A DNA stretch of 49,209 bases from Macrostomum lignano (GCA_002269645.1 NIVC01002877.1:83292-132500); one strand, 5' to 3'; numbered from the stretch's first letter, positions 11,755 to 49,209 are shown. The notes: generated by a model from the letters alone, not told the origin. Translations and numbers: made by a program.

Positions 11755-13574
11755 CTATAGCTTGGCGCCGCCGTCTAGCCGGGCCAGGCCGAGCTCTACT
11801 GCCTCCGCGGCGGTGCCCCAGCTGAGCGCCACGCCGTGCCCGCCGTGCCCGTAGCAGTGGACGGCGTAGCCCTCGGCGGCCACCCGAATGCCGCCGTGTC
11901 GGGCCGGCCGGAGGCCAACAAAATCCGGCTGCGACGTCGACGTTGCGCCAGTCGCGCCAGGCCGCCCGTCGGAGTCGGCAAACGCGGCGGCCAAGCCGGG
12001 CAGCAGGCGGACGGCCCGGGTTCGAATGTCAGCAGCATCAGACTCCCTGGCCGTCAGGCAATAATCGCCAGCCTGACGGACGCCGCCAACCGTGGCCAGG
12101 TCACCCGGGGCAGCGCTGGGATAGGCGTAGGTCGAGTCCGGCCCGTAGAAGCCCCGCTTTAGCCAGGGGGCTCGAACCCGGGCCACCTGGCCGCGGACCG
12201 GATGTACGGCCGGGTCGCCTCCGGCTAGTCGGCCGGCCTCTAAACCGGCGCAGTTGAACACCAGGTCGGCGCCGGCGCCCGCCTCTTCGAGACTGGCGAC
12301 TCGGCGGCGCTCGATGCGGCCGCCTGCACAATGGGATCAGGTCCCCAATCAGCTTAGTCTCCCAAACTGAATTACTGGCTAGCTTGAGATTAACAACTGC
12401 GGTTTTGACTTTGGATTAAAGATAAGTAGGCTAATCTCCTGAACTGAGGATTAGCAACTGTAAATGGAGATTAGGGATCAGTGGCCTAATCTCCTGAACT
12501 GAGGATTAGCAACTGTAAATGGAGATTAGGGATCAGTAGCCTAATCTCCTGAACTGAGGATTAGCAACTGGAAATGAAGATTAGGGATCAGTAGCCTAAT
12601 CTCCTGAACTGAGGATTAGCAACTGGAAATGAAGATTAGGGATCAGTAGCCTAATCTCCTGAACTGAGGATTAGCAACTGAAATGGAGATTAGGGATCAG
12701 TAGCCTAATCCCCTGAACTGAGGATTAGCAACTGTAAATGAAGATTAGGGATTAGTAGCCTAATCTCCTGAACTGAGGATTAGCAACTGTAATGGAGATT
12801 AGGGATCAGTAGCCTAATCCCCTGAACTGAGGATTAGCAACTGTAAATGAAGATTAGGGATCAGTAGCCTAATCTCCTGAACTGAGGATTAGCAACTGTA
12901 ATGGAGATTAGGGATCAGTAGCCTAATCTCCTGAACTGAGGATTAGCAACTGGAAATGGAGATTAGGGATCAGTAGCCTAATCCTCAGATCTGCCAATCC
13001 TTGACTGCAGATTGCAGGGCTCAAACACCAAGAACAAAGACTCACCAGCGGCCAAGAACTGATCCAGCAGCCAGGGCAGGTAGAGCCTGGGATCAGCCAG
13101 CACGCTGAGGCTCTCTATGCCGAAGCCCAGCCCGCCTGGCCAGTCGGGGAACTGCGTCAACAATTCCTCCGGAGTCAATTCGCGGCAACCGCCGGGCGCC
13201 ATATCAGAATAGGCGTAGCGTCGGCGCGGCGGCGGCTCCCGCGCCACCTGAACTATCGGCAGTGGCGCCACGCCGGCGCGCGGACCGGCCGGGCCAAAGG
13301 CCAATCGGCTTAAATGACGCAACGAGTCGCGGCACCAGCGCTCTGCTCTGTCCGGACTGTCCGGCGACAGCTCTTCGACGCTTTCAACTCGAAATGCGCC
13401 AGCCGCCACCCAGGATGTGGTGCCGGCGTTGAAGGCATCGGCTATTATCGTCACGGAGGAGCCTGGCGGAAGCGCCGACTGAGCCTGTAGGGCGACCGAG
13501 GCGCCAACCAGGCCGGCGCCGACAACGGCTACGCGAGCCGGCCGCCCCCATCGCTGCTGCTCTCTGGCGCTCAT
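11755..13574 (-). CDS. DDO: D-aspartate oxidase / D-amino-acid oxidase family flavoenzyme, 365 aa, 2 exons, C-terminal PTS1 (AKL)
   Basis: Exons 13574-13046 and 12323-11755 (phase 1, G|GTGAG..CAG|). FAD motif VAVVGAGLVG; also VFNCAGL, VRGQV, VGLRPAR and HCYGHGGHG; ends GAKL*. The DDO versus DAO assignment is tentative. Confidence 0.85.
12425..12984. repeat. Minisatellite, 55-bp unit with internal inverted repeat, about 10 copies (oxidase intron)
   Basis: Unit GTAGCCTAATCTCCTGAACTGAGGATTAGCAACTGTAAATGGAGATTAGGGATCA. Confidence 0.93.
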
Positions 13575-15733: not shown

Positions 15734-16546
15734 GTAAGCACAGGCACTTAATATTTCAGCTAACCGATCATCCTTTATTTGGCTTGCAACTGAATGCTAA
15801 ACAGATAAAAACAAAATAAAAAACTAGCGCGAATTAAAAATAAAGACTCTACACAGAGACATTTTGTAAAACTGTTAAAAGTCACTGACAATATAAGTTA
15901 TAAAACTGGTTAAAGATATGGTAATAAACAGGCCGAAACTAGTTGAAGCCAGTAAAGACTACAAAACAATTAATTGAAAACAGCGATAACAGAAAGCAAA
16001 CAAATATTTTAATGGCAGTGTATTTAAAGCAGGCACAAAAATACACAGTTAGTCAGCATCTGCAATTTGAATATTGAATCAAGCAGAGCATGAACTCACT
16101 CCCCCCACTGCAGTCGGTTATTTAAAAAGCTAAAAATCCAGATAAACTGGTAAGCAATGACAGTAATAATCGCAATATATACTGATTAGATACAATTAAA
16201 ATAAGCAATCAATCTATTATTGTTTATATATTATATAATTTTTCCAACCCTAACGGACTCAAATTGTAGTGCTCAGCTTTATAGAAACCGATGTGAATCA
16301 TAAAAACTGCAGGTGTGAAACAGATAAATATTAGAGATAAATATCTGTTTAGCGAGCTCCGGCAGGCCAACGATGGTATTACAATATAGCATACAGGTTG
16401 CGATGACAAAAACAAACAATTCAATTAACAAGGCATTTCATTAGCATTATACTGAAGATTATATACGAAATTTATTTAAGGCGGGAAGCAACGAACAGAA
16501 CTCTTACAGCTTTGTAATTTATTTGTTTCCTTTTCAGGTGTGGTTG

Positions 16547-17660
16547 CATCTGGGAGGCTGGCCCGGCAACTGAGCATCTGGGAGGCTGGCCCGGCAACTG
16601 AGGATCTGGGAGGCTGGCCCGGCAACTGAGCATCTGGGAGGCTGGCCCAGCAACTGAGCATCTGGGAGGCTGGCCCGGCAACTGAGGATCTGGGAGGCTG
16701 GCCCAGCAACTGAGCATCTAAGAGGCTGGCCCAGCAACTGAGGATCTGGGAGGCTGGCCCAGCAACTGAGCATCTAAGAGGCTGGCCCAGCAACTGAGGA
16801 TCTGGGAGGCTGGCCCAGCAACTGAGCATCTGGAAGGCTGGCCCAGCAACTGAGGATCTGGGAGGCTGGCCCAGCAACTGAGCATCTGGGAGGCTGGCCC
16901 AGCAACTGAGGATCTGGGAGGCTGGCCCAGCAACTGAGCATCTAAGAGGCTGGCCCAGCAACTGAGGATCTGGGAGGCTGGCCCAGCAACTGACCATCTA
17001 AGAGGCTGGCCCAGCAACTGAGGATCTGGGAGGCTGGCCCGGCAACTGACCATCTGGGAGGCTGTCCCGGCAACTGAGCATCTGGGAGGCTGGCCCAGCA
17101 ACTGAGCATCTGGGAGGCTGGCCCGGCAACTGAGCATCTGGGAGGCTGGCCCGGCAACTGAGGATCTGGGAGGCTGGCCCGGCAACTGAGGATCTGGGAG
17201 GCTGGCCCAGCAACTGAGGATCTGGGAGGCTGGCCCGGCAACTGAGGATCTGGGAGGCTGGCCCGGCAACTGAGCATCTGGGAGGCTGGCCCAGCAACTG
17301 AGGATCTGGGAGGCTGGCCCAGCAACTGAGCATCTAAGAGGCTGGCCCAGCAACTGAGGATCTGGGAGGCTGGCCCAGCAACTGAGCATCTAAGAGGCTG
17401 GCCCAGCAACTGAGCATCTGGGAGGCTGGCCCAGCAACTGAGGATCTGGGAGGCTGGCCCAGCAACTGAGGATCTGGGAGGCTGGCCCAGCAACTGAGGA
17501 TCTGGGAGGCTGGCCCAGCAACTGAGCATCTGGGAGGCTGGCCCAGCAACTGAGCATCTGGAAGGCTGGCCCAGCAACTGAGCATCTAAGAGGCTGGCCC
17601 AGCAACTGAGCATCTGGGAGGCTGGCCCAGCAACTGAGGACCTAAGAGGCCGGCCCAGCA
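16547..17660. repeat. Minisatellite, 28-bp unit ATCTGGGAGGCTGGCCCAGCAACTGAGC, about 40 copies
   Basis: Directly visible tandem array downstream of the G-alpha stop codon. Confidence 0.95.
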
Positions 17661-17831
17661 AGTGTATGAGGGTCGGAAAAGAAGCCAATTGACTAAATAT
17701 TGAACTTCAGCCTCGCAAAAGCAGCAACGCACGCCTCTACAATGAAAACACAGGCGGAAATAGAGCGGGAAAAGTCAAAGCATTATTAGACTCTTTCGTG
17801 TTTGAAAATCGAACGATTTACATAAAAAAAT

Positions 17832-19370
<1,539 letters not shown>

Positions 19371-19585: not shown

Positions 19586-20790
19586 AAGGAGCGGGTGGCC
19601 TACTGAAGGAGCGGGTGGCCTACTGAAGGAGCGGGTGGCCTACTGAAGGAGCGGGTGGCCTACTGAAGGAGCGGGTGGCCTACTGAAGGAGCGGGTGGCC
19701 TACTGAAGGAGCGGGTGGCCTACTGAAGGAGCGGGTGGCCTACTGAAGGAGCGGGTGGCCTACTGAAGGAGCGGGTGGCCTACTGAAGGAGCGGGTGGCC
19801 TACTGAAGGAGCGGGTGGCCTACTGAAGGAGCGGGTGGCCTACTGAAGGAGCGGGTGGCCTACTGAAGGAGCGGGTGGCCTACTGAAGGAGCGGGTGGCC
19901 TACTGAAGGAGCGGGTGGCCTACTGAAGGAGCGGGTGGCCTACTGAAGGAGCGGGTGGCCTACTGAAGGAGCGGGTGGCCTACTGAAGGAGCGGGTGGCC
20001 TACTGAAGGAGCGGGTGGCCTACTGAAGGAGCGGGTGGCCTACTGAAGGAGCGGGTGGCCTACTGAAGGAGCGGGTGGCCTACTGAAGGAGCGGGTGGCC
20101 TACTGAAGGAGCGGGTGGCCTACTGAAGGAGCGGGTGGCCTACTGAAGGAGCGGGTGGCCTACTGAAGGAGCGGGTGGCCTACTGAAGGAGCGGGTGGCC
20201 TACTGAAGGAGCGGGTGGCCTACTGAAGGAGCGGGTGGCCTACTGAAGGAGCGGGTGGCCTACTGAAGGAGCGGGTGGCCTACTGAAGGAGCGGGTGGCC
20301 TACTGAAGGAGCGGGTGGCCTACTGAAGGAGCGGGTGGCCTACTGAAGGAGCGGGTGGCCTACTGAAGGAGCGGGTGGCCTACTGAAGGAGCGGGTGGCC
20401 TACTGAAGGAGCGGGTGGCCTACTGAAGGAGCGGGTGGCCTACTGAAGGAGCGGGTGGCCTACTGAAGGAGCGGGTGGCCTACTGAAGGAGCGGGTGGCC
20501 TACTGAAGGAGCGGGTGGCCTACTGAAGGAGCGGGTGGCCTACTGAAGGAGCGGGTGGCCTACTGAAGGAGCGGGTGGCCTACTGAAGGAGCGGGTGGCC
20601 TACTGAAGGAGCGGGTGGCCTACTGAAGGAGCGGGTGGCCTACTGAAGGAGCGGGTGGCCTACTGAAGGAGCGGGTGGCCTACTGAAGGAGCGGGTGGCC
20701 TACTGAAGGAGCGGGTGGCCTACTGAAGGAGCGGGTGGCCTACTGAAGGAGCGGGTGGCCTACTGAAGGAGCGGGTGGCCTAATGAAGAG
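19586..20790. repeat. Essentially invariant minisatellite, 20-bp unit GAAGGAGCGGGTGGCCTACT, about 60 copies
   Basis: Identical 60-nt lines from 19621 to 20760. Confidence 0.98.
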
Positions 20791-21309
20791 CGGATAGAAA
20801 TAAAAAACTAGAAAATCCAAATCATTCCAAACCAGACAAATAGACAGAGAGCTTCAATGTAGCGTTTTATTTCCAACAATCGAACTTTTTCTAAAGTTCA
20901 AGCAAGCTAGACCGGGCGGGGGGCGCTTTGCTTGCGCAATTATTGAACTGTCAAACGCGCAATTATTTAGAGTTGTTCACAATTGTTGTTATCATGATCA
21001 ATGCATGCACGACAGTCTGCTATTAGTATTTAAGTGCGGCTTCTGAAGACAGCTAAAATCGGGGGGAGGGGGAGATAGATGGCCCAGGAGGGAGAATTCA
21101 GCTAATAAATATAAATGCCATAGCCATTTTGCGTAGCTCATGGAAATACGCAATTTGACTGAAAAGCATTCTTTAATAGACTACTTATATATGCTTAAAA
21201 GAGTAGTATAAAAAAACAGTGTGATTCAATCCCTCCTAGTCAGCTATCTCTCTCCTGCAAGCTATAGAAAAATGCATTAGTGCGTTTTTCAACACGAAGG
21301 GCAAAGCCG

Positions 21310-30525
<9,216 letters not shown>

Positions 30526-30922
30526 GTCCCTGTTGCAAATCTGAAGATATTTTCAAATATCCCAGTCTCTGGTTGTATTCTTGATATAAACCTGACAAAC
30601 ACTAAATTTTCTTGGAACTCCGATAGGAAAGTAGATTTTTTGAAAAAAAAATAGTGTTTTAAAAGAAAACGTTATTACGACAAATAAAGTTGTTTTTTTA
30701 TTTTTTGTAACTTACTGGTGCTAAAACTTTTAGCATTGTAAATAATTGCTTACCTGTTTGTTATACTTTGCTGTCACGATAAAATTTGCACTGCAAACAT
30801 GAGTGTGCATTTTTTATTATTATTTAACTAGCTTTACTAGGCGTTGCTCAGTAAAATAGCAAATCTTTTTGTGATTTTCAGTCAACTAACTGTTATTCGG
30901 ATACAAATTCTTGCTTTTAGCT
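30526..30922. promoter_or_regulatory. Probable bidirectional promoter between head-to-head GNL3 and DESI1
   Basis: Divergent start codons only 397 bp apart; a putative GNL3 5'UTR intron at 30753-30541 (CAG|GTAAGC..TTCAG|); an acceptor-like TTCTTGCTTTTAG lies 2 nt before the DESI1 ATG. Confidence 0.55.
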
Positions 30923-33900
30923 ATGACTGAAGTCAAACTCTACATCTACGATATTTCACAGGGCTTGGCAAAGTCTCTTTCGCCTATGTTTCTTGGTAAG
31001 TTAATCATGTAGTAGTTGAGATTGGAGTTGGGATTGGGATTGCCGATTGGGGTTAGGATTGGGATTGGGGTTGGGATTGTAGCTTAGTCTTCAGCTCAGT
31101 TTTAATCGTTTTGTGCATTTTTGTTAAAAGCACCAAATTTACATAACAATAATTGAATAAACCTATTTATTAAATGGAAAATTTTGGTTGTGCTGTTGTT
31201 GGGCTATTGCATTGAACAAAAAAGTTTCTTGACAGTGTGAGACTGAGTGAGTTCGATTCACTTAAAAAATACTTAATCGCTAAAAATGGACACTTTCTAT
31301 GAAAAAATGATATTTATTTAAGTCACTGAACAATATAAAATAATAAACATGTTATCTAATATATTATAAATATAAATAACTTCAATCATTTTATACTAGC
31401 TATGCTAGCATTTTTGCTAGCAAATCAAATATAGCATAGAAGACAACTCATTTTTAGTATATAGGATCTATTCTATCACTATTGTTAGCTAGTTATAACT
31501 TGATTAAGATGCTGCTAAAAGTTCAAGTTCAAGGGTGCCAGGGTGGCAGAGCCTAATATTTTAGGGGGGGGCACAGGTCTTTTATAAGCTACTAATTAGG
31601 GCCTAAAATTAGAAAAAGCTGTAAAAGCACTAAAAATTACCTTGTGGACTCATTTTCTAGGGGTGGCACATGTCCCCAATGCCACAAGCTCCTGCTGCCC
31701 ATGGACTATTTTGAAACTTTAGACATATTAAAAGTAGGCTAGTATATTACAATAAAATAAATTTATGCATCTGTAAGATTAACAATTAATAATTATAATA
31801 AATCTTAAAATGTATTAATAGCTATATATGCCACTTGTCTTTAAGTACAAAAGAAGTTGATTGAACCTAAACAATTTTATCTACAATGCAAGTTATCTAT
31901 ATGCTTTCTTCTTGATAGGTAAACAAATTGATGGAATTTGGCACACATCAATTGTTGTCTTTGGCCACGAGTACTTCTTTGGAAGTGATGGAATTCAATT
32001 TTGTTCACCTGTAAGTATTTAATATTGATGTTTTTTATAAAGATAGAATTACTAAAATAACTAATAAAAAGCTCCAAAAGAAAATCTAGGAGAAAATCTA
32101 TATATATTTTCAAATCAAGTTTTGAATTAATTCTATTCTGGACTATATTAATTTAGGGCTTGTGTTCAACAAGTGGTTCCAAGGGGTTGTCAAATTATGC
32201 AACTCACACCCTCCAAAGGCCTGAAGATATCTGATGATTAGAGAAGTCAAAGGGCCACTATACACCCAGTGTATGTCTGCATATAATAAGGAGACAGAGG
32301 AATTTGCAGAACTCTTGATGTTGCCAAAGGCATTGCTCTAGGGTGCCCAGAATACTTAGAATATTATTATTACATAAGTGATTGCTTTTATACTACATTA
32401 ACTAACCATTATAATGTAATTCAGAGTGGTACAGTGCTTGGCGAGCCGTTGGAGGTGCACAACCTAGGCCGCACAGAGATGCCCAAGGAGGTGCTGGATG
32501 AGCTGCTAGCTGACCTGAGTCGGGACAGATTCCACGGCAGCCGGTACAATCTGCTGCGACACAACTGCAACAATTTCTCCGATGAGCTGGCCCAGTTTCT
32601 CACTGGCCAAGGCATTCCGGCGCGCATCACCGGCCTGCCTGCCGAAGTCTTGTCGACGCCATTCGGCGCCCAGCTGGAACAGATGCTCAGCTCGATGCAG
32701 ATGCAGCTGACTCACACCCAGGGCTATCACTATTCGAATTCCACTGCCGCTAATTCCGGGCCTACTACAGCTGGTGGCGGAGGCGCAGCTGGTTAGTGTG
32801 TTAAAGATTTTCGGACTTGAAAATCTCGGATTCAAACTCGGGACCTCACCTGTGTAATAAGTGACACAGTTAAAAAAAAAATTTTATGTTTATAGAAGTT
32901 AAAAAATATGATTTGCACTCTTTGTATTGAGCATGGTTCTTTTCTATTTACATTTTTTCTGAAAGTGCGATCCCTCATCATGTACAGGTACTACTAATAT
33001 ACTCGGCCTATCAATTTTTCCTACTAATAGTAGCATGCTAATAATTAATCCGCTTTTTATTTAGGCCCCGGCAGTGGTAGCGGACAGGTGCCACAGTCGC
33101 AGACTCAGCCGCAGTCGCAGCTTCCAAGCCCCATCAAATTTGCTAATCCGCCAGCCGACTTTGCCGACGACACCGGACCTGACGATGTCGCCGACAGCGG
33201 CGAAGACGCCGAGCTTTGCTGGCTCGACGCTTTAAACGAAGCGGAAATTTGCGCCGATTCCAGTCGGCGCCTCACGTCGCTTCTCCGACGCACAGCGACG
33301 TCTGGTGATTCCAGCCGGCCGAGTCCGCTCGCTGCGCCTGCGGCCGCTGATCGCTTCGTGTCGACGCTCGAACAGCTGCTGGCCAGGTCAGATCGGCAGC
33401 CCGCTTTTGCCGAACTGGCCGGCCGGGTGGCTGTCAACTCGGCCAGCGACTTGCTTGCCGGCGGCGTTTCGGCCGATCGACTGGCTAACTGTGCCCGCCG
33501 ACTGCTGGCCTCGGGTGGCCGGGCCGGACTGCCTGAAGTGGGCGGGGCATTGGCGCTTAACTTGCTTCTGCTGCGGCCGGTGAGCAATTGGGGGTGTAGC
33601 ATTGATCCCTGAGGAGTTAGGGTGTAGCATTAATCCCTAAAAGAGTTATACTTTTAGTATTAATCCCAGAGGAATTAGAGGGTGTAACATTTCCTGGAGA
33701 GCTGTAGCGGTGCTGCTTGTATAGATAGGCTCAAGAATACAATATCTTTAAACCTGCAAACCCGACCGATCCTGCCGCAATATCGCTCCCGCCATTTCAG
33801 GGCAACGAGTCCCTTGCTTTCGACCTCGGCTGCCTCCTGACCGACCGTTTGCAGGCGATGGCCGCCTCCGGCGCTTCGGAGGCCGCCCAGCTGACGTTGG

Positions 33901-34046
33901 CGCGGGCTTTGTGCGCTGCGGCGCGTAACGCCGATCAACTGGCGCCACTAGCGGCTATTCAAGGACTGAGCTTGGACAAACTGGCCGGCCTGTGTCCGCA
34001 CGTGGCCAGATTGAATCAGGCCGTTGTACGGGCTAAGGCTAATTAA
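30923..34046 (+). CDS. DESI1: DESI1 (PPPDE peptidase / desumoylating isopeptidase) with long C-terminal extension, 430 aa, 5 exons
   Basis: Exons 30923-30995, 31919-32010, 32425-32791, 33065-33579, 33801-34046 sum to 1293 nt. [21 protein letters not shown] (catalytic His), [12 protein letters not shown] (catalytic Cys) and [11 protein letters not shown]. Confidence 0.9.
32205..32280 (+). mobile_element. Short fragment of the same SINE family in DESI1 intron 2
   Basis: CTGATGATTAGAGAAGTCAAAGGGCCACTATACACCC closely matches CTGACGATTAGAAAGTCAAAGGGCCACTGTACACCC at about 6791-6827. Confidence 0.55.
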
Positions 34047-34184: not shown

Positions 34185-34862
34185 TCTGGGATCGGGATCT
34201 AGATATTTGAGATGCGGGGTTTAATAGACATCTGAGATGTGGAATTTAGATTTCTGAGATGCAGGATTTAGAGATCTGGGATGCGGGATTTAGACATCTG
34301 AGATGCAGGATTTAGACACCTGAGATGCGAGGTTTAGATATCTGAGATGCGGGATTTAGACACCTGAGATGCGAGGTTTAGATATCTGAGATGCAGGATT
34401 TAGACACCTGAGATGCGAGGTTTAGATATCTGAGATGCGGGATTTAGACACCTGAGATGCGAGGTTTAGATATCTGAGATGCGGGATTTAGACACCTGAG
34501 ATGCGAGGTTTAGATATCTGAGATGCGGGATTTAGACACCTGAGATGCGAGGTTTAGATATCTGAGATGCGGGATTTAGACACCTGAGATGCGAGGTTTA
34601 GATATCTGAGATGCAGGATTTAGACACCTGAGATGCGAGGTTTAGATATCTGAGATGCGGGATTTAGACACCTGAGATGCGAGGTTTAGATATCTGAGAT
34701 GCAGGATTTAGACACCTGAGATGCGAGGTTTAGATATCTGAGATGCGGGATTTAGATGTCTGATATGCGGGATTTAGATATCTGAGATGCGGGATTTAGA
34801 TGTCTGATATGCGGGATTTAGATGTCTGATATGCGGGATTTAGATATCTGAGATGCGGGATT
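34185..34862. repeat. Minisatellite, 20-bp unit TCTGAGATGCGGGATTTAGA with alternating 40-bp higher-order pattern
   Basis: Directly visible downstream of the DESI1 stop codon. Confidence 0.93.
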
Positions 34863-36965: not shown

Positions 36966-38240
36966 TACTACGTCTGTATTCTTTGGGGTGGGCATTTTTG
37001 CGAATTACCTTGGTTGGCCGCCAAATCGGTCAGCCGGATCGGCCGACTGTTGCGCATGTATGGGACCGATGGTGCCTAAGGTGTTGCGCCAGGGTGCCCC
37101 GCAGCCCTCGTATAGGAAACCAGCATCAATGAACACTTTAAACAAGAAGAAAACGTTGTAACTTCAATGTTTCGTTTTAATTTTGACAGTTTTAGTAGAG
37201 CCAACGCTCCATTTATTTATGCATATACAAACTAATAAATCATAAATAAATATGTATGCAGGAGACTGGAGAGGGAACAAAGGGCATCGAATTGACATTG
37301 GAGATGAGGTGGGTGGGTGCAGGGGTGAAAAACGCGGCTTCTTTGCTGCTAATTGACACCATAAATAGATATATGATGAAGCTGGGACTCAGAAATTGCT
37401 GACTACATAAAGTTTGTGTGTGCAGCTTCTTAAAAATGTGCTTAAACAAAATATTAATAAAGAATGTGTTATTAACAGTACCACGAGGCTAACGCTAAGC
37501 GACAATTGCGCACAATTTCATTTTCCCCTATTTGCAAGTGAAGGCAGCGACGTGAGCTCCAGCAACGGACAGGCTCTGCGTTCCGTTATTTTGCTTGTCT
37601 TTTCGGCTAAAGACATAAGAAGTAGAAAAAAAACAACAGAAAAAGTAGAGAAGAAAACAAGGCTGAGCACAAAACGAAGGAATTGATAAAAAGCGGACGC
37701 GGAGCGGTTGCTATAGTAACCAAAAGCGCAAAACGAATAAAAGACAGAGCGGATGTGCAATCATTAATGAAGTGAAATAGCAATAACACTCGAGTTTAAT
37801 ATGGTGCGACACACAGCAAATCTACTCAAATTTATAGTTCATCAGCAATCAGTTTGCCTAGAAATGTACAAGTGGAGTTGCTTTATTCTCGAATCGATCT
37901 CAAATCTGGCAGGACTAGAATATCAAGCTTGAGCTGTTAGTAATTATAATAAGCACGATTCATATAGTTACTACCGTTAATATTGCAATAGAAATTTGAT
38001 TAGAAACAAAACAAACAGAAGACAAAAAGGCAGCAGTATCCAAGGTGTGTGTGTGTGCGCGCAAAACTTTGATAAAGTGCAAAAAGGTGGACTGTAGAAA
38101 GATACTCAGCTGACGGGCCACCCAGAGAGATTCCGCAATTTAAGACAACGCGGAAATGAGGAAAAACGCAATTAACAGTTGCGGGACGGCAAGTTTCGCT
38201 AATTTTAACAAAAAATTCTATTGCTGTGAGCTCGGCAGCC

Positions 38241-41200
38241 TCAGGCCAGGCTCTGATGCAGCGCCAGCAGCGCGTTCAGCTCCGTCTCGGGCAGGCGGGC
38301 CCGCTTAGCGGCGAATTCCGCCAAGCCGAGCGGCGACTGAGCGTGCAGGCAGCAGGCCGGGATGTGCAGCAGCAGCCGCGCCTCGCCAGACAGCGTCGGC
38401 AGGCGATCGGCCGACGACGACCACCACTGAGCCGCCGAGCCGGAAGCTCCGGCCTGTTCGAGCAGAGACTCGTATCGTCTGGCCTCGTCTTCTACAGACT
38501 TGCGCGCCTGATCCAGATTCTGCTGCACCACCAGCGAGTTCCGCTTCCGCCGGCTGATGTGGCCGGCCTCTTCGGCCAGCTGCTTCTCCACCAGCTGGGC
38601 GACGGCCGACTTCCGGTCCGTCTCGGCCGGGAGTGGCAGCCGCGGCTGCAGGAAGGCGGCCAGCTGGGCGAGGCGCCACACCTTGTCCGGGCTGCGGTAG
38701 GCCGCCAGCAGCCGCTCTCCGGCTGCCTCAGCCAGCGCCTCCACAGCGGGATCCACCGCGGCGTCGGCGTGCGAGGAGGGCGACGCCGTCGAGGACGTCG
38801 CCGGTTGGCGCAGCACGGCGGGCAGGTCACGCACCACCGGCAGAGCCTGGCCGAGGCTGCCAGACGAGGCGGAGAAAAGCCGGCCAAGGTGGTCGCGGAA
38901 CCGGACAAGGGCGGCCGCCAACTCGCGGGCCGAGCGAAGCTCCGGATCGGTGCAGCCAGACTGCGGCGATGGCGATGGCGGCTTCGTCACGGAAGCGTCG
39001 TCCACGAGACGCTGCAGGGCGTCCAGCGCCGACTCCCAGCCGGATTCGTCATCGAAGTCCTCTTCCTCCTGATCCTGATCCTCGTCTTCGTTGACGTCCT
39101 GAGCCGCTTTGACGTCGCAGTCGGCATCCATGGCGCAGTCGGTGGCGACGGTGCCGACAGCAGCGTCGTTGCCTTCGCAGTCTGTCGCGGTTGGCGCCTC
39201 CTGATCATCTAGCAGGTCGTTACAGTTGACGTCCGCCTTCTTCGGTCGGCGGGCATCATCGTCTTTCGCTAGGCGACGATTGGCGCGAAGGATCTGACGA
39301 CGTCCGTAGTGACCGCGGCGACGACTGCAACGGCGGCTGCGGCAGCGGCTGAGAATCGCCTGGCAGGCCGGCGTCTCGGCCAGGGCGTTGCTGACAGCCT
39401 GCGACATGGCGGCGTGCAGACAGGGCACGATGATAATCTTGTCGATGGAGTCGTGCATCCCGTTCTGGTTGGCCTGTTGCAGTTGGCGGACAAAGTCGGC
39501 CGGTCGGTTGCAGACGATGGGCAGAAAGTCCTGCGGCAGCTGCGACTCGGTGTAAGCCGAGATGATCTCCAGGCAGGTGGATGCCAGCAGGTTTAGGTTG
39601 GGCAGCTGGTGGTGAGAGGGGTGATAAATCATCATTTGAAGTCGGTACTTTGGGGACTTTAGAGAGCTTATTGTGTCTTTGACACCTTCCAGTGTCGCTT
39701 TGGGGTTTCTTGGTGTGTCTCTGGTGTCCCCTTGGTGTGTCTCTGGTGTCCCCTTGGTGTGTCTCTGGTGTCCCCTTGGTGTGTCTCTGGTGTCCCCTTG
39801 GTGTTTCTCTGGTGTCCCCTTGGTGTTTCTCTGGTGTCCCCTTGGTGTGTCTCTGGTGTCCCCTTGGTGTTTCTCTGGTGCCCCTTGGTGTGTCTCTGGC
39901 ATCCCTTGCTGTTTCTCTGGTGCCCCTTGGTGTTTCTCTGGTGTCCCCTTGGTGTTTCTCTGGTGTCCCCTTGGTGTTTCTCTGGTGCCCCTTGGTGTTT
40001 CTCTGGTGCCCCTTGGTGTTTCTCTGGTGTCCCCTTGGTGTTTCTCTGGTGTCCCCTTGGTGTTTCTCTGGTGCCCCTTGGTGTTTCTCTGGTGCCCCTT
40101 GGTGTTTCTCTGGTGCCCCTTGGTGTTTCTCTGGTGCCCCTTGGTGTTTCTCTGGTGCCCCTTGGTGTTTCTCTGGTGTCCCCTTGGTGTTTCTCTGGTG
40201 TCCCCTTGGTGTTTCTCTGGTGCCCCTTGGTGTTTCTCTGGTGCCCCTTGGTGTTTCTCTGGTGCCCCTTGGTGTTTCTCTGGTGCCCCTTGGTGTTTCT
40301 CTGGTGCCCCTTGGTGTGTCTCTGGCATCCCTTGCTGTTTGTCTGGTGCCTCTTGGTGTCTGTTGGCAATTCTAATTTCGACTAGTTTTAATCCTCAAGT
40401 CAATAACATTCTGTCACTGCATATCATAACGATTTCACGCAATTATACTCGTAAGCAGACGAATTGCATCAGTAGATAAGGTGAGAACAACAATCCCTCC
40501 GCACGCTTGACTTGTTTTCCTCCTCTCGTTCAGCACCAGCTACGAAAAAGAAGTCGGACCCAGCGATGCGATATGCGAGCTAAGGAGGCCTTCCTTCCTT
40601 CTATGAAGCTTCCTCTCTCCATCTCCATAGTTGTCAAGGCGACTTGCCGCAATTCTCCGTTTCGTGTTCGCATTGTGCGTGTGCTCCCCTTCTTCCCACC
40701 CCCAGCATGCCATTGCAGCAGATGCTTCATCAAAGCAAAGCTGAGGCTCCCCTGGCGACAGAGTGGCGATCGCGAGCCCTGCGGCCAAGCAGATTCAACA
40801 ATAGGCTGCTTATAATCGGCAGCAGAAAAAGGCGCGACGCCAAGGGAGGTGGTGGGCGGGAGATGCGGGCTGGCGGCAGCTCATCAGCTAAGCGTGCCGT
40901 GACTTAACAACCGCCATGGGGTGTCGGCTTGAGGCCAGATTTGAGGCCTCGCGGTCGCAGCGAAGAAGGCAAAGAATAACAAGGGGACACGGAGAGGAAG
41001 TTGGCCCCCTATAGCTCCTCTTACCCGGCCAATTGAACAGTGAGAAGCGTTCCCGCGCTGCGAAGATCGAGTAGAGGATTATGAGATCCCTTATAGGCAT
41101 CCCTGGGACAGAGGGAGAATAGCGGGGGTGGCGGGCTCCATTGTTCGGAGCGGAACTCGGGCTCATTGTCACAGCCTCTCCGACTTGAAAAGACGTCCGT

Positions 41201-43065
41201 GCAAGTCTTTCCTGTCTGGCTTGAAGGCTCGGCTGGGAGGGAGGCCGACAAGCTTCTTCCATCACCGAGCTCAGGATCTCTCTTTGCCCGCAGCCTCATC
41301 TCCCAGCATCCTCTTTATTCTCAAAGCCCGGCGATTTACCCTCCGCGCGTTTGTCAGCCTGGAGCCTTCAAACTCCCCGGTCTTCCCTCTCTTAGCTCAG
41401 CTCAATTTCAGACTGAGCTGACGGGAGACTCATCAATTTTAAGTTTCTTTTTTTCATAAAAAATTCGGCCCACACCTTTTCAAAATGCCAGATCGACTTT
41501 GCGGCTGCCGTTCCCGTCTTGATTGGTTCAGAAAATTTCTCTCCAGGCTAGGTTAAATAGATGGATTCAAATCTGAATCTGACATTCTTTGTGGATCCTA
41601 GACTGGTGGACAATAGCGGACAGGCTCGACAAGACAGACCTAAGACACAGACACTAAGACCGACGAAGACACAGACACTAAGACAGACGAAGACACAGAC
41701 ACTAAGACAGACCTAAGACACAGACACTAAGACAGACGGAAGACACAGACACTAAGACAGACAAAGACACAGACACTAAGACAGACGGAAGACACAGACA
41801 CTAAGACAGACGGAAGACACAGACACTAAGACAGACGAAGGCACAGACACTAAGACAGACGAAGACACAGACACTAAGACAGACCTAAGACACAGACACT
41901 AAGACAGACGAAGACACAGACACTAAGACAGACGAAGACACAGACACTAAGACAGACGGAAGACACAGACACTAAGACAGACGAAGACACAGACACTAAG
42001 ACAGACGAAGACACAGACACTAAGACAGACGAAGACACAGACACTAAGACAGACGAAGACACAGACACTAAGACAGACGAAGACACAGACACTAAGACAG
42101 ACGGAAGACACAGACACTAAGACGGACAAAGACACAGACACTAAGACAGACAAAGACACAGACACTAAGACAGACCTAAGACACAGACACTAAGACAGAC
42201 GGAAGACACAGACACTAAGACAGACGGAAGACACAGACACTAAGACAGACGGAAGACACAGACACTAAGACACACGAAGACACAGACACTAAGACAGACA
42301 AAGACACAGACACTAAGACAGACCTAAGACACAGACACTAAGACAGACCTAAGACACAGACACTAAGACAGACGGAAGACACAGACACTAAGACAGACGG
42401 AAGACACAGACACTAAGACACACGAAGACACAGACACTAAGACAGACAAAGACACAGACACTAAGACAGACGGAAGACACAGACACTAAGACAGACAAAG
42501 ACACAGACACTAAGACAGACCTAAGACACAGACACTAAGACAGACGGAAGACACAGACACTAAGACAGACCTAAGACACAGACACTAAGACAGACGGAAG
42601 ACACAGACACTAAGACAGACAAAGACACAGACACTAAGACAGACGGAAGACACAGACACTAAGACAGACCTAAGACACAGACGCTAAGACAGACGCCAAG
42701 GACAGGCTGTGTAAAGGACCATTGGGGTGTACTCATATCTTGAGTAGCAAATTAAGCAGCACAATTAAGACACTCACCGGTCGGGTCTCCAGAACGCGAC
42801 ATTTAGAAGACGATGACAGAGTCTGCTGTAGCTGCTGCTGTGCCGGAGTGCTGTCTTGCGGGACAAACGCTCTGAGCGTTAGCAGCCTGGTGCCGGCATG
42901 ATTGCGCCACACCTCGGCTGAGAAGGCACGCACTCCGGGGGCGCCGCTGATTAGAGCGGCTTTCACCGCGGCCTGCTCGGAGGTCAGGGCGGCCGGTAGC
43001 AACTGTTCGAGTAGCCGTTCGCGCTTCGGCGGCTCGCACCTGGGCGCCAAGCTCTGCACCAGGCG
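38241..43065 (-). CDS. hAT-transposase-derived (ZBED1/DREF-like) protein with DDE residues substituted; 5' end not found
   Basis: Exons 43065-42778 and 39605-38241 join in phase 0 (CCG|GTGAGT..CCACCAG|CTG). Colinear hAT motifs: LVQSLAPRCEPPKR (cf. L..LxPxYxxPSR), FSAEVWR (cf. TDxWT), IVCNRP (cf. VTDNG), PCLHA (cf. CxxH), SGWES (cf. TRWNS), AAFLQPRL (cf. AxxLDPRF), and C-terminal QWWSSSADRLPTLSGEARLLLHIPACC...KRARL (hAT dimerisation domain). Confidence 0.75.
39708..40360. repeat. Minisatellite, 21/22-bp unit CCCCTTGGTGTTTCTCTGGTG(T) (ZBED-like gene intron)
   Basis: Directly visible; it accounts for the repetitive N-terminal part of ORF 38241-40328. Confidence 0.95.
41632..42695. repeat. Minisatellite, 24/25-bp unit GACACAGACACTAAGACAGACG(G)AA (ZBED-like gene intron)
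   Basis: Directly visible tandem array. Confidence 0.95.
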
Positions 43066-46000
43066 CTGCAAATGTGCCACAGCGGGGGGTCGTAAGGTGG
43101 GTTAGGAGCAGAAGTCGAAAAAAAAGAATAATAATGCCCTCCCCCCTGAGCAGGCAGTGTGAATAATGCAAAAGCTGACGCAAAAGCAGAAGAGAGAAGA
43201 CAGAAGAGAGAATGGGCCAGTACCAGCAGGAACTGCTGGACAAACACCGCGCCACTCGCGAATGACGCCGAACGAAAAAAAAAATTTTTTAGAGGCCGGA
43301 GGGGTTGCGGCGGAGACTTCGGTCGGAGCCATTGTTGGTGCCGCTAACAGGAAGCGACTTCCTCTTCTAAAGCCCACTCGCTCAATCACTCTCACCGTCT
43401 CTCTGTCTCTCTGTGTTGTCTCCTTCTCCCCCCTATTACAGCCGGGAAAAAAATGCAACAAAAACTACCCAGCAGACAGGGGCCCGCCTATTCTAGCGTA
43501 GGAAACTGCCCAAACTGATCGAAGAGTGGCTAAGCCGGCGCTCTCAAGTGAGGCGCCGCTGGTCGTCAGCAACCCGAAGCTTTGGGTGGCGTGGCGGGCG
43601 CTGCTGAAGTGTGTGAGCGGGACCTGCAGCAGCAGCTGATATCCAGCGCAGCCTAGCGAGCTGCTCGTGTGCTCATTCCATTACTTGCCTCTCCCTGTCA
43701 GGGACCGGGAATTCCCGTTCTCCTGCTGCCCACCGTTTTGTGACACAATTATCGGGCCCTCCTATGCCAACACTCGAAAGTCATTGTTCCCCGCCCTTCC
43801 AGCGATCTGGCTGAGTGAATGTGAGAGAGAGGGGAGGACGGGAACTCGATTCCCCGACCTGAAAATCCGTCCTCTTTCCCGTTCCCTCTCAACCTCAAAC
43901 CAACCCCCCGGCATTGTTCGCCTCGGTCCCGCGGGGTGACAGGCTGAGCAATAAGAGGATTCTGTCCCCATTGTTACCAACGGAGCCGATTTCCGGAGCA
44001 GCAGGACCCGAAGAGGGCCACCCCGAGAAGAAGCTCGGTTGCGGTGGAGTGGGGCGGCTGAATGATTACCTGAACAAACAGTGCGGGCCCCGGCCCATTC
44101 ACGCAGAAGACAGCGCGCTCAGCCGCGGCGCTCGCAAGGGCTTCCTGTCCCCCTTCAGGCCCTCCAGGGGAGCGGGACATTCCGGCGCCCTCTGCAGCCC
44201 CCCTCCACCCTCGGAGTTCCCAAATAGCCCAGACCTCCACCTGGAGTCGATCTCTGCTCTGTGCCCCCTCTCTTTTTCACTGTGCTGCTGCTGTTCATTG
44301 TTCTCCACTCAGCCTTCGCTCTCCCCTTCCCCCGCTCCACACGAGAACGCCCCCCCGCTACCTCGTGTTCTATTTTTTATGCCATTCTCAAACAATGGGA
44401 TTCGAGTCAGCGAGTTTCGATGAATTGATGATGACCGACCGTGAGGCGGAGAGGCAGGGAGGGTAGTCAAGCCGGGGAAAGGGAAGACCGCGGGGAGCAG
44501 CGAGGCATGGATAAAAAAGCTCTCCGAATTCCAGATCCCGCCGGGACCTGGAGGGTGCCAGCTTTTTCACCACCATGCTGGCTCGCTCTCAACCCCCCCC
44601 CCACTCTCTCTTTCTCATCAGGCCAGAGCCTCTTCTAGAAATCGATTTCTTTCCGCTCGTTCCCGCCGCCGCGTGCCCCTCATCGTCAGCCTCCCCCACA
44701 GGTGTCAGCCTCAGCAGCGCGAAGGCAAAATCAGCCGCCGGCGACCCCCAGCAGCGGCGGTGGTGGCAGCAGCGGCGGAGGCAGCAGCAGATGCCTCAAG
44801 TCACTGCCAACCCTTCGCAGAGCTCCTCCCATCCCCCCGCGGTGAGCCGCCAGCTACCTCAACCCCAGCCTCAAAATACAATAGACCCCATCCCCCTGGC
44901 GAGTGCATTGTTTCGCTCGAGTCTCAAGCTCCCCCGGGGGGCTCAACCAGTGTTGCTGCTGCTGCTGCGAGCGAATGAGTGAAGCTTCTGGGCCGGGCCT
45001 GTCCCCCCCCCTCTCTTCTCACTCGTCGCATTCCTCTACCCTCCCCCCATAACCAATTTCTAATCCCATTTCAGGCAGTTGCCGTGCTCACCCCACACAG
45101 CATCACCTCCCCATCAAGCGTCACCCGGGCCACCCCCTCCAGCGTCTCGAACCCTTCGGCTTGGCCAGGCCCAGCTGCCTGCTACAGAAGAGGTGAAAGC
45201 CAAATCGATAATGCAGTCCCTCAGTCCTCATTTCCAGCTGCTTCTCCTTCCACACCCCAGTCGCTTTCTGCTCTCGCTTACTAACACACAAAGTGAAAAC
45301 TGCTTGCCACCTTGCAAACAAATACTTTCTATCAAGCTCATTCAGCTTCCTTCCCGCGGCGGCTGCGGTGAACTCGGCCCCGAGCAGCAACTTCCTATGC
45401 GAGTAGACTCAAGCTCCCAAATTGGGAATTTGGAGGGAGGGGGGGGGGCAACTCATAATCGCCTACCAGCCTCGACTCCGCATGCCTGGGCAGGCGAGCA
45501 GAGCAATAGAAAGAAATGGAAAGAGAGGCGCGCCGATTGCGCACTTGAATCTAAGCGGATCAGCTTTCATTGAACTGCTCTATATAAGAGGAATTGGGGC
45601 GCTCAAAATCTTTGTTTGAAAGCTTGCAAACTGCGGTGTTGGGGAGATGACGAATACAGAGAGACAGGATGACAACAACACAAAAAATGTGGGAATTCTC
45701 CCCCGATCCGAGCGCCCTCCTCCTCTTTTACCTCCAACGAGGCTGGCTTTGCGGGAAATCGGGGGGGGGGGGGAATAAATGCGGCTTTTGAGTCGGATGG
45801 GTAAATCGATATCATCACCTCGGGCAGCCCCCCCCCGTCACCCACCCTGCCGCCTGTCTCCCAAGTGTGCAGAGAGGCTGACTAGGCTGCTTCTCAAGTT
45901 GGCGAAACGAAATAGACTACTTTTTTGCATCGCTCCTGCGCCCATTGTTCTGGCGCCAAGTTTTTTTTGATCGCGACAGCAAGCAAGAAATTCGGGTCCG

Positions 46001-49000
46001 ACTCACACAAAGCTGTCGAACCAAAAACGCTGTGGAGGGATTGATAATCCCGGCCTATGGAGCTCTTTGAGAGTCATCTTCCCTTTTTGATGGGGGAAGA
46101 CCACACAAGTTTTTTTCGGTCCAGGGTGCAGCGTCAACAACAGCCGCCCCTTCGTGTGTCAGGCGCTTTTTTGGATGCACAGAGCGGGCGGCCATTGTTA
46201 ATTGGATCTGCGGTGCTCAAGTTTCATCATTAGAGTTGGGGAACTCAATTGGACTCGACGAACAAGATATCCCAATGCCAGCTCCCGCAACCACCTTGAC
46301 ACTGCCGAAGTTGGCCGGCGCCTACATAGATTGTTATATACCTCGATTGCTCGACAGGTATGAATGATACTGGGACAGTTTTGGGATGGAGAAGGAAGCC
46401 ATTAAAAGGCAGTTCTCCCGAATTGCGAGCAGCGACGATAATGGGGGGAGGGAGGGAGGGAAGGAGGGAGTCACACGCTGCGGGACCCGCAACGACGGGG
46501 CTGAGGGAGGAAGGCCTGGCTTATTCTGCTGCATCTTCTGTGCCGAAAGCAGCTCGTGGGAACTGCAGCAGCATAGAGTTTCTTTGTTCTTTACACCCAC
46601 TTCCACCTTTTCCATCGCTCCCTCCTCCATCTGTTTCTCTACTCCCACTTCCCCCTCGAGCGCCCCCCAACCCCTTGCGATTCGAGGCAGAATGCAGCAG
46701 AGTGGGTACAGGGAGGGAATGCGCCTACCAGAGCTCTTCCGCCTGCTCACCGCGTCTCAAACGCTCTTATTTCTTAGACTTCCCCCCCCCCCCTATTCTT
46801 TCCTAACAACGCGCGAGAATGCGAGCCGCTCCTCGGTATTCAGCAGTTAGATCTGCAGACTCCACGCTTTGTTCCATCCTTCCCAAAAATTTTTTATAGG
46901 ACAACCGCCTCATCCTCCGCGAGGATCTGCGGGCGGTTCTATTATCCTGCCACAGCTAATCTAAACACAAAAACCCGATCTCGCGGCCTGAAGTTTGTCT
47001 GCTACATACCAGCAGGTGCGAGACGCGCTGTATAGATCTTCGCGAAGTTAACAAGCAGGCGCATATAGGGAGGCAGGCAGGCAGTGAAGCGAACGAGCTC
47101 CGCACGAGAGAGAGGCATTGAGGAGCGGAGCAATGATCCCAATTTATGGCGATCCAGACGCGCTCGAGCTATGCGGGGGGACTGAGTCGGGTGGCGGAAC
47201 TCGTCTTGCCGTTGAGGAGAATTCAGGAGAGGCTTTTATTATTATGTTCCTCCATCTTCTAGAGCATCATCTCCCCCCATGCTCACCGCCGCACTGTTAA
47301 AGACATGTTTAATGCTGCGGGCCCCCGACAATGGTCCGGCCGGGGCTCAAATAAAACCGCAGCTGCAGAGCCTGACAGCGTCGCTGCAGAACTACGCTCG
47401 CCCCTGGCCACTCGCATCATCTCAAAGGCTATAGCGCAATTCATTGCTTCGCAGTCCATTGAGCCTCCATCAGCGGCTTGTATTGAAACTCGTATTCTGC
47501 GCTGCAAACCAACTAGCCAAATCCCACCCCGTCAATAAATTCTCCCCTCACCCCCAGGTAGCCGCAACTTTTAAACTCCTCGTCCAGCAGCAGCAACAAC
47601 AGCAGCAGAAGCAGCAGCAAAGTTGCAAAGCTTTTTTTGGAGGCCCTCCCGCCAGTAGTTCGCCTCTCTCTGCAGCCCCCCAACCCCGCGGCTCCGGCGT
47701 TTGGACATTTTTCCAAAGGCTTTTCACAGCAATGCACGAGAGAGAGAGGGTTTCAGCTGGTTGAGGGTCGAGTCGGGCCCAGCAGGGGAGCATTCCAAAT
47801 TTCCCCCAGTCCAAACCTCCCGCCTCCTGTTGCAGACACAGTTTTTGGGAAAGAGAGGCAGAGGCGGCAAGCGCAAGCTGTATCTGCCTGCCGCAACAAC
47901 AACACAATACGAGGCGGACGAACCCCCCCCCCTCTATTCAGCCATGCTTCAACTTTAGTCCCTCTCAACTTCTCTCTTCTCTACTGGGTCCGCGGGGCCA
48001 CTCGCGAACTCCGGTCCGGGGCCGCATGAATAATTGAGCAGTAATTCTATTTCTCCCTAATTATCTCTACCTGTAGGTCTGCTGCCATCACACAATGCCC
48101 TGGGCCGCGGGGAACAATGGCAGGGGGGCCGACTCTTCTAACCCGCAAGTCCCCATTCCACTCCGGAGAGCCTCATCATCGCGCCCGAGTCCGCGCGCGA
48201 GCCTCTTTTACCCTGGGATCCGAGCTTTACGAGCCCCTCTCCTGCCTCAGCGCTTCCCACTCTTCAACTCATTCATTCCCCTCCCTCATCTCTCGTGTCT
48301 CCAACCCCCCCCCCCCCCCAAAGTTTTACGGGCCTGCAGCGCAGCACGGGAGTTTTAACTCCGCGCCGGACTCTGCAGCCCTCATCATACGGGGAATCGG
48401 CGCGGCGGCAGCAGGCAGCTTCCACCTCCACCTCCGCCTCCGCCCGCGCGGGGGTCGCGCGCCGTCACTTCATCATCCCGGGAGAGCGGCGGCAGCCATC
48501 GGACCCGCACGCCATTGTATGCCGGAATGCCGCATCCAAAGCGGAGGGGGGGAAGGGGACGCACGGCCGACCAGGTGGGAAGCGAGGCCCGGCATTCCGG
48601 CAGCAGGTTTTTTCAAACTTCTTTTATCCCAAGCTGCTTGCCTAAACCACCAAAACTCATCACTCGCAGGCTCAAACGCCCCCCCCACCACCAGACACTC
48701 TTGAACCCGCGCGGCCAGCTTCTTAGACAGAGACAGAGAGCGGGAAGAATCGCTCGGGCTCGAGAAAGCCGACCACCCACCGCTTTGCCGGCCTTCGCGG
48801 CCAAGCCCAGCATCCATTGTCAGCCTCATCCAACTGCTCACCGTCACGCAACGCTGCATAGCTCATATACCATCGCTCTCGCTAGCAGCTGTTTAGCCAG
48901 TCAGTCTATTATGCCCAGACGAAACCAACTCGAGAGTGAGACGGAGGCAGCTCAAGCAAAACGCGTCAGAAACAAAAAAGCCGCAATATGCGAAATAACC

Positions 49001-49209
49001 AACTCTCCCGCCCAACCCGCAGAAAATGCCCCCGCATTCATCCCCATCCTCTTTCGCCCCCTGAAAACAATTGAATTCATAGCCAGCCGCGCCAGGACAC
49101 AAACTCCAGAGCCGGCACACGCGAGACCCAGGGCCAACTCAAACTGAATGCTTGAATTGCGGCAACAAGTTTGCATGTAGCAAGTGGACCGCCCGTGCTC
49201 CACTTGTTG

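Follow-up and report, generated by a model that had tools for sequence, protein, structure and literature searches.

One classic way in which new regulators arise is the domestication of hAT transposases, examples being the ZBED proteins, DREF, and DAYSLEEPER. DAYSLEEPER of Arabidopsis and Gary of the grasses are hAT-derived genes that have no terminal inverted repeats (TIRs) and have had their catalytic acidic residues replaced, while the hAT C-terminal dimerization (hATC) domain is retained and the genes are under selection; DAYSLEEPER also keeps its BED finger and binds DNA. The host proteins GTF2IRD2 and PRKRIR/THAP0 retain mainly the C-terminal part of a hAT transposase without a BED finger, and the P-element product KP is an N-terminally truncated transposase that acts as a dominant-negative regulator. 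For active hAT enzymes, the structural reference is Hermes from Musca domestica (PDB 2BW3, 4D1Q, 6DWW, and 8EDG). Here, we describe a gene that belongs with the domesticated hAT genes (ZBED/DREF, DAYSLEEPER, and Gary) and resembles the BED-less derivatives keeping mainly the C-terminal part. It lies on the minus strand at positions 38241–43065 of a 49,209-nucleotide stretch of Macrostomum lignano DNA (the window), which forms the end of contig NIVC01002877.1 (GCA_002269645.1), its last base coinciding with the contig end. We consider it probable that this gene, Mlig000368.g4 with the homeologue g3, is a host gene that descends from a transposase of the hAT superfamily and is unable to transpose. 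In the literature, we came upon no description of a domesticated hAT transposase in flatworms.

The gene model consists of two minus-strand exons. Exon 1 (42778..43065; 288 nt, 96 codons, residues 1–96) has an uncertain 5′ boundary and a frame that stays open to 43101; exon 2 (38241..39605; 1365 nt) encodes residues 97–550 and the TGA stop at 38243–38241. Between them lies a phase-0 GT–AG intron of 3172 nt (39606..42777), 4617 nt long in the homeologue, with canonical splice sites (CCG/GTGAGT ... CACCAG/CTG) across which the exons join in phase 0 to give 550 codons. The intron holds two minisatellites without assigned strand, one with a 25-nt unit (41631..42695; ~43 copies) and one with a 21-nt unit (39709..40359; ~30 copies). 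As to the latter, an earlier examination of the window from its sequence alone (the sequence-only reading) had remarked that a repeat-derived N terminus masks the gene among the six-frame open reading frames (ORFs), and the 695-aa ORF at 38241..40328 indeed runs from exon 2 into the 21-nt repeat, the translation of which makes up its false N terminus. The two-exon structure proposed there (43065..42778 plus 39605..38241, minus strand, 550 aa) equals GenBank PAA54641.1 (BOX15_Mlig000368g4, "hypothetical protein, partial"), which has the same junction, VLETRP/LPNLNLL, and is otherwise identical in protein sequence, and the genomic locus recovered for that entry is 100% identical to window positions 28241–49209; PAA64400.1 is a 97%-identical copy. 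Searched with the joined 550-aa translation, one protein cluster matched, the M. lignano "hypothetical protein BOX15_Mlig000368g3/g4, partial", and GenBank gives the gene no name beyond hypothetical protein. As the GenBank gene set was built from RNA-seq assemblies after removal of transcripts overlapping annotated repeats (PMC5730564), the identical junction makes the splice transcript-supported. Past the stop codon, candidate 3′-end signals are an AATAGA at ~20 nt followed by a genomic A-run (38203–38221) and a canonical AATAAA ~355 nt downstream (37882–37887).

Three UniProt fragments (A0A1I8HX66, A0A1I8G2A0, and A0A1I8I5Z1; 243–248 aa, near-identical) also represent the hAT-derived gene. 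Their names, "DEAD_2", "Rho-GAP", and "RWD domain-containing protein", refer to domains that are absent from the sequences, and all three stop at one point (GNDA/GNDAA/GNDDA); possibly, they derive from older gene models that were chimeric.

On profile evidence, the C terminus (residues ~452–548; 38250..38540, minus strand) is certainly a hAT dimerization domain, as the sequence-only reading had maintained. A custom profile of 120 hATC sequences scored 31.5 bits (E = 7e-12), a score reached by none of 3000 shuffled sequences, the best of which did not exceed 11.2 bits. The Pfam model that had been proposed as the check, Dimer_Tnp_hAT (PF05699), gave E = 0.033 for the whole protein and 18.4 bits (E = 0.0018) for the C-terminal 92 aa, both scores falling under the gathering score of 21.4. 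In a phmmer search of PDB with the C-terminal stretch, the top match was Hermes (E = 0.2–2), with Hermes E572 aligned to Q519.

For the remainder of the protein, suitable references had to be assembled. Starting from an 81-aa Hermes fragment, a search returned four short fragments only, and among the matches listed in a hAT profile search, all 120 were C-terminal fragments; full-length references were therefore taken from genomic loci, three further ones of which yielded no usable reference, and a metagenome scan. Two of them (L003 and L005) were recovered from the loci adjoining two C-terminal hAT fragments and their products carry the ZBED1_RNase-like, ZBED1_RNase-like_helical, and Dimer_Tnp_hAT domains; most of the Hermes sequence was read from its alignment to L003. 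The metagenome contigs provided 57 further hAT cores, 19 of which had intact ORFs and entered a 22-sequence profile. The reference elements (L003–L006; GCA_977065575.1, GCA_977066385.1, and GCA_977066275.1) lie beside fragments of Tc1/mariner DDE_3, and the gene caller splits them into a BED/RNase-like product of 426–500 aa and an hATC product of 113–147 aa.

Compared with this profile, residues 1–270 scored 3.0 bits, a value reached by 4 of 3000 shuffles (P ~0.0013), and the reversed sequence scored −2.4. Alignment with hhalign against the hAT core profile (P = 0.022) gave one colinear alignment of 154 columns over query positions 2–185, and the block around the RW motif, GWESALDALQRL against rWnSsldmlkrl, had a score equaled by 3 of 3000 shuffles (P ~0.001). 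Identity to Hermes is only ~19–25%, counted within the aligned blocks. With a 3-sequence hAT profile hhalign saw the C terminus alone, and global hhalign was unsuccessful; Pfam and PDB phmmer searches with the N-terminal 186 aa gave no matches, the Pfam set scanned being one that excludes the newer families PF27041 and PF27039, which annotate the reference hAT elements. No hAT similarity was detectable in the insertion region (residues 287–460). The AlphaFold2 (AF2) model, unusable as a structure, predicts the order helix, helix, three strands, helix (β1-β2-β3-α1), which is that of the start of an RNase-H fold, with the strands of exon 1 predicted at residues 47–54, 60–67, and 89–96; exon 1 thus covers the pre-core helices and β1–β3 of the RNase-H-like core (hhalign query positions 2–96 on hAT core columns). 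Each test is weak, and we nevertheless accept from the sequence comparisons that the N-terminal core is homologous to hAT because the matches are independent, have the right order and spacing, and stand upstream of a certain hATC domain. The colinearity of hAT motifs that had been read from the sequence is accordingly kept in its order throughout, the significance of its N-terminal part being only marginal (P ~0.001–0.02). At the sequence level, the layout of a hAT catalytic region is kept as well, from pre-core helices through the RNase-H-like core and a putative α-helical insertion region to the C-terminal hATC domain.

In block order, the protein shares with Hermes an LLPS-type helix, a D-x-W strand, a V-T-D-x-x-A-N strand, a C-x-x-H helix, an RWNS helix, and a C-terminal domain of the pattern WW...P.LS...L.IPASS..SER.FS; the W and the last catalytic position lie 233 aa apart, similar to the 253 in Hermes. 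Hermes requires D180, D248, R318, W319, and E572 (PMC6027215), which in the Hermes reconstruction sit in ATIDLWT, FVTDRGANVV, PTRWNS, and SAASERTFS. Of these five essential residues, four are replaced and W286 is kept (all positions on the minus strand). E51 (42915–42913, codon GAG) takes the place of D180, turning D-x-W into E-V-W; N129 (39509–39507, AAC) that of D248, by profile alignment and by gapless comparison with FVTDRGANVV; G285-W286 (39041–39036) that of R318-W319; and Q519 (38339–38337, CAG) that of E572, in the alignment of IPACCLHAQSPLG with IPASSAASERTFS. The triad thus reads E51/N129/Q519 for D/D/E, and RW has become GW; the differences from Hermes are D180E, D248N, R318G, and E572Q. 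The CxxH motif (C265-x-x-H268 in Hermes) is degenerate, C158-L-H160 (39414..39422), with the cysteine aligned and the histidine one residue early. The sequence-only reading had placed E, C, and Q at the catalytic positions and noted CLH for CxxH and GW for RW. Its first and third assignments (AEVW and HAQSP) and both degenerate motifs agree with ours, and the second moves from C128 (39512–39510) to the neighboring N129; as both residues are nonacidic, the shift leaves the loss of catalysis unchanged. These substitutions support the claim, made there as well, that the protein is catalytically dead; it would be able neither to transpose nor to cleave DNA. The amides N and Q are isosteric with D and E, each change being one nucleotide step, and the pocket may therefore retain the ability to fold and to accommodate nucleic acid while no longer cutting it. 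A partial third copy with 91% identity (A0A1I8I5Z1) keeps E51, C128-N129, and C-L-H, so the loss of the residues predates the duplications. The protein further differs from Hermes by a basic/acidic insert between CxxH and RW that is ~75 aa long: this lineage-specific segment (residues 183–283; 39045..39347, minus strand; predicted local distance difference test, pLDDT, <35) has a basic stretch of RRPKK type at residues 183–219 followed by an acidic stretch at 226–283, and most amino acid differences between the two gene copies lie in or near it.

The second copy occupies a locus on contig NIVC01001753.1 that is colinear with window positions 27931–49209, Peptidase_C97 gene included, and differs only in minisatellite lengths. 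Since the colinearity extends over >20 kb, the two loci are genome duplicates and not dispersed insertions; such duplicates are expected in the M. lignano genome, which two published accounts describe as recently duplicated (PMC5730564; PMC10468722). Between the two coding sequences there are 30 substitutions and a single in-frame codon indel. Between the two intraspecific homeologues, the ratio of nonsynonymous to synonymous divergence (dN/dS) was 0.27 by NG86, and pairwise maximum likelihood under GY94/F3x4 gave ω = 0.22 and κ = 4.5 and rejected ω = 1 (likelihood-ratio test 15.7, P = 7e-5). The annotated frame has the lowest ratio among the six frames, and the differences are distributed 18:10:2 over codon positions 3:1:2. 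Divergence between the homeologues is stepped: it is 1.2–3% at 28000–~39700, including exon 2, and 0.1–0.5% at 40750–49209, which comprises unique intron sequence, exon 1, and the upstream region. Because almost no differences separate the copies from the 21-nt minisatellite (39709–40359) upstream, all coding divergence is in exon 2. The step lies at this repeat, which suggests that the copies recently underwent gene conversion or recombination and that the breakpoint is within the repeat. The dN/dS comparison suggested earlier, made here on the two homeologues, thus supports purifying selection on the coding sequence since the duplication.

Signs of mobility are missing in the material searched. 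Active hAT elements have short TIRs and 8-bp target duplications and occur in multiple dispersed copies. We found no convincing inverted repeats flanking the gene, in agreement with the predicted absence of TIRs, and a phmmer search of 1.84 billion representative proteins gave as its sole match a third M. lignano fragment and revealed no paralogue family. The gene IDs matched, among papers and supplements, only in PMC7336406, where g3 and g4 have 30–99 reads in each of four body fragments and are classed "Non-Specific" (Table S8); by these published read counts, expression of both copies is low and shows no regional bias. The RNA-seq-derived GenBank models (PMC5730564) and the read counts (PMC7336406) together support a spliced mRNA. 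A fixed duplicated locus, ω of 0.22, no TIRs or paralogue family, and expression point to a host gene and not to a decaying or mobile copy. Within M. lignano, a host gene arisen by domestication, the co-option that the sequence-only reading had favored over a decayed transposon, is thus supported by ω, the shared flanks of >20 kb, and expression. For the longer term, the strongest argument is indirect: the protein has diverged from every known hAT past phmmer detection and has yet kept 550 open codons and its motifs in register.

The gene's 5′ end needs separate treatment. An in-frame TAA (43102..43104, minus strand) closes the frame upstream, no in-frame ATG lies between it and M146 (39458–39456), and two out-of-frame ATGs, opening ORFs of 6 and 124 aa, precede M146. 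Published models start at 43044 (GenBank), at 43065 (UniProt A0A1I8G2A0 and A0A1I8I5Z1, with A0A1I8HX66 having the same boundary in another frame), and at ~43077, the last inferred from coding sequence (CDS) lengths of 1665 and 1668 nt (PMC7336406), four codons more than in our model. Spliced leader (SL) trans-splicing affects 30–39% of M. lignano genes (PMC8629364; PMC5730564); the SL, CGGTCTCTTACTGCGAAGACTCAATTTATTGCATG, is 35 nt long and ends in ATG, and its acceptor motif is [T/C]TNCAG (PMC8629364). The motif TTGCAG directly 5′ of exon 1 (43066..43071, minus strand) fits this and is a candidate splice or trans-splice acceptor: an SL joined at 43065 brings its ATG in frame, giving MRLVQSL..., and a second CAG (43056–43054) is also an in-frame acceptor candidate (join at 43053). 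PMC12582326, citing Cheng et al. 2006, states that the AUG of flatworm SLs can initiate translation. As SL sequences were trimmed before gene annotation (PMC5730564), such a gene would be left with exactly this kind of start-less "partial" CDS. With no in-frame genomic ATG before M146, the most likely start of the 550-aa protein would be the 3′-terminal AUG of an SL joined at the TTGCAG acceptor (43066/43065), a choice that we hold tentatively, at a little under an even chance. A start in an unseen upstream exon is distinctly less likely, and a non-AUG start or M146 takes what probability remains.

No BED finger or other DNA-binding N terminus was found in the model, which has no zf-BED match, and upstream of it on the gene strand there was no BED-like CCHH pattern or hAT N-terminal similarity in the 6.1 kb up to the contig end or in 7.4 kb at the second locus; the search for upstream exons with a BED finger that the sequence-only reading had recommended thus came back empty. 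This sets the gene apart from ZBED1/DREF and the ZBED genes (PF27041 ZBED1_RNase-like, PF27039, and PF05699), of which the finger is the defining feature, and protein-library searches detected no orthology to any ZBED gene. The earlier label "ZBED/DREF-like" should for this reason be dropped. From Hermes the gene differs likewise in that no BED finger, site-specific DNA-binding domain, or TIRs were found. It is like DAYSLEEPER and Gary in being a domesticated hAT, of independent origin and in a different kingdom. With GTF2IRD2, PRKRIR/THAP0, and KP it shares the loss of the DNA-binding N terminus of the transposase and the retention of the multimerization part; those proteins have another DNA-binding module fused or an active partner element, neither of which was found for the M. 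lignano gene.

Judging from the domains retained, the protein would be a non-catalytic nuclear scaffold or regulator. It could self-associate or pair through the hATC domain, the dead pocket may remain folded and able to hold nucleic acid without cleavage, and the basic, nuclear localization signal-like and acidic disordered insert suggests a nuclear adaptor interacting with proteins or chromatin. The hATC module and the core scaffold have been retained and are therefore presumably what is selected. It might also act as a dominant negative against active hAT transposases; this is less likely, since no related active element is detectable among M. lignano proteins. A fully specified version, in which a Macrostomum-restricted, BED-less exaptation with an SL-donated AUG and an E/N/Q pocket that binds without cleaving would act as an hATC-oligomeric regulator (dominant-negative guard or chromatin factor), is doubtful as a whole. 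The identification gives a hypothetical protein of a transgenic regeneration model an evolutionary origin and suggests properties that can be tested, namely dimerization, nuclear localization, and the lack of nuclease activity. It adds a candidate ORF dependent on an SL AUG and, being BED-less, a case that raises the question of what is selected once DNA binding and catalysis are both gone. The category is well known and the functional evidence indirect, and the advance is accordingly incremental.

Several observations weigh against regarding the gene as a domesticated hAT transposase. The N-terminal homology is weak in each single test, and the AF2 model, computed from a three-sequence alignment, has a mean pLDDT of 39.4 and no Foldseek match in PDB below E = 1. 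No homologue outside M. lignano was found in 1.84 or 5.8 billion protein clusters, and selection is shown over ~2% divergence and 30 substitutions within this one species. Furthermore, dN of ~1.1% is little below the flanking noncoding divergence of ~1.6%, and dS of ~4% exceeds it, so mutation bias at GC-rich third positions may inflate the selection signal. The gene is annotated as "partial", with no start codon in any of the three published model starts, and in the older fragment A0A1I8HX66 exon 1 is read in a different frame over its first 38 codons, a sign of a 1-nt deletion or an assembly error. Finally, the proposed function is derived from the domains that remain.

Among the alternatives, the one that survives best holds that our model covers only the 3′ portion of a larger gene, of ZBED type or a fusion, with BED or host-domain exons beyond the contig end. 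An upstream exon out there is a serious alternative: besides the "partial" annotation and the missing in-frame ATG, exon 1 begins right after an AG, the onset of hAT homology is abrupt, at profile position 30, with the conserved D-x-RPFS block missing, and both contigs stop 6.1–7.4 kb upstream. We still think the larger gene unlikely, given that those 6.1 and 7.4 kb contain no BED-like CCHH pattern or hAT N-terminal similarity, that three independent protein models end at or near the exon 1 boundary, and that introns in M. lignano average 1.1–1.4 kb (PMC5730564).

Another reading is a transcribed, functionless relic of one ancient hAT insertion, in which a chance GC-rich ORF and mutation bias in dN/dS mimic a gene. 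In its favor are the lack of homologues outside the species, the missing start codon, the low expression, a dN near flanking noncoding divergence, and ORFs of 120–330 aa in the other frames of the GC-rich exon 2. Against it, the sequence has diverged from every known hAT past phmmer detection and even so retains a frame open over 550 codons, splice sites that are correct, and in-register hAT blocks; the likelihood-ratio test rejects ω = 1 even with κ and F3x4 in the model, the signature of selection is specific to the annotated frame, and both other copies have only in-frame indels. We regard the relic as improbable. Slightly more improbable still is that only a shorter protein is made from M146, containing the CxH helix, insert, insertion region, and hATC domain, with the 145 upstream codons as an untranslated leader. 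M146 is the first in-frame ATG, but the two out-of-frame ATGs come earlier, and the 145 codons form an open frame in which hAT blocks, E-x-W among them, stand in register; in the 91%-identity third copy, the upstream frame is kept and all indels are in-frame.

That the gene is a copy of a still or recently mobile hAT family, autonomous or defective, is very improbable. The M. lignano genome is repeat-rich and a frameshifted fragment exists in an older assembly, but a mobile family is opposed by the replacement of four of five essential residues, by TIRs not being found, by the >20-kb flanks common to the copies, by the exclusion from the GenBank set of transcripts overlapping annotated repeats, and by the protein databases holding no members. 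Chance matches in a protein not derived from hAT are barely credible: Pfam stayed under its gathering score and phmmer, PDB, and Foldseek found nothing significant for the N terminus, but the hATC profile match (E = 7e-12, no shuffle above 11.2 bits) is joined by three further weak matches in correct order and spacing.

The neighbors of the hAT-derived gene are ordinary host genes. A Peptidase_C97 gene (30923–34046, plus strand) is convergent with it, and exons on the minus strand encode a G-alpha protein (17835–18767), a DAO-type oxidoreductase (12981–13574), a NACHT/NPHP3_N protein (7796–8629), and ankyrin repeats (1108–1824). In PMC7336406 (Tables S6 and S8), the CDS listed under Mlig000368.g2 to g13 range in length from 348 to 3162 nt; the hAT-derived gene is therefore filed in a multigene transcriptional-unit cluster. 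The minus-strand G-alpha, DAO, NACHT/NPHP3_N, and ankyrin exons could be other members of this cluster, in which case the whole might be one long unit, polycistronic or merged.

Tandem repeats, which make up ~15% of the M. lignano genome (PMC5730564), are frequent in the window. Tandem Repeats Finder reported 25 rows with units of ~19–55 nt in 10–60 copies, overlapping rows representing the same array; examples are 2405–2895, 8825–9866, 16546–17661, 19586–20793, 22026–22977, and 34200–34857. The minisatellites are often intronic or intergenic, several yield long spurious six-frame ORFs, and (AGAC)n and (CTGT)n tracts are also present. An AT-rich block at 25000–32000, with a GC content of ~30% against 50–60% elsewhere, adjoins and partly underlies the 5′ part of the Peptidase_C97 region.

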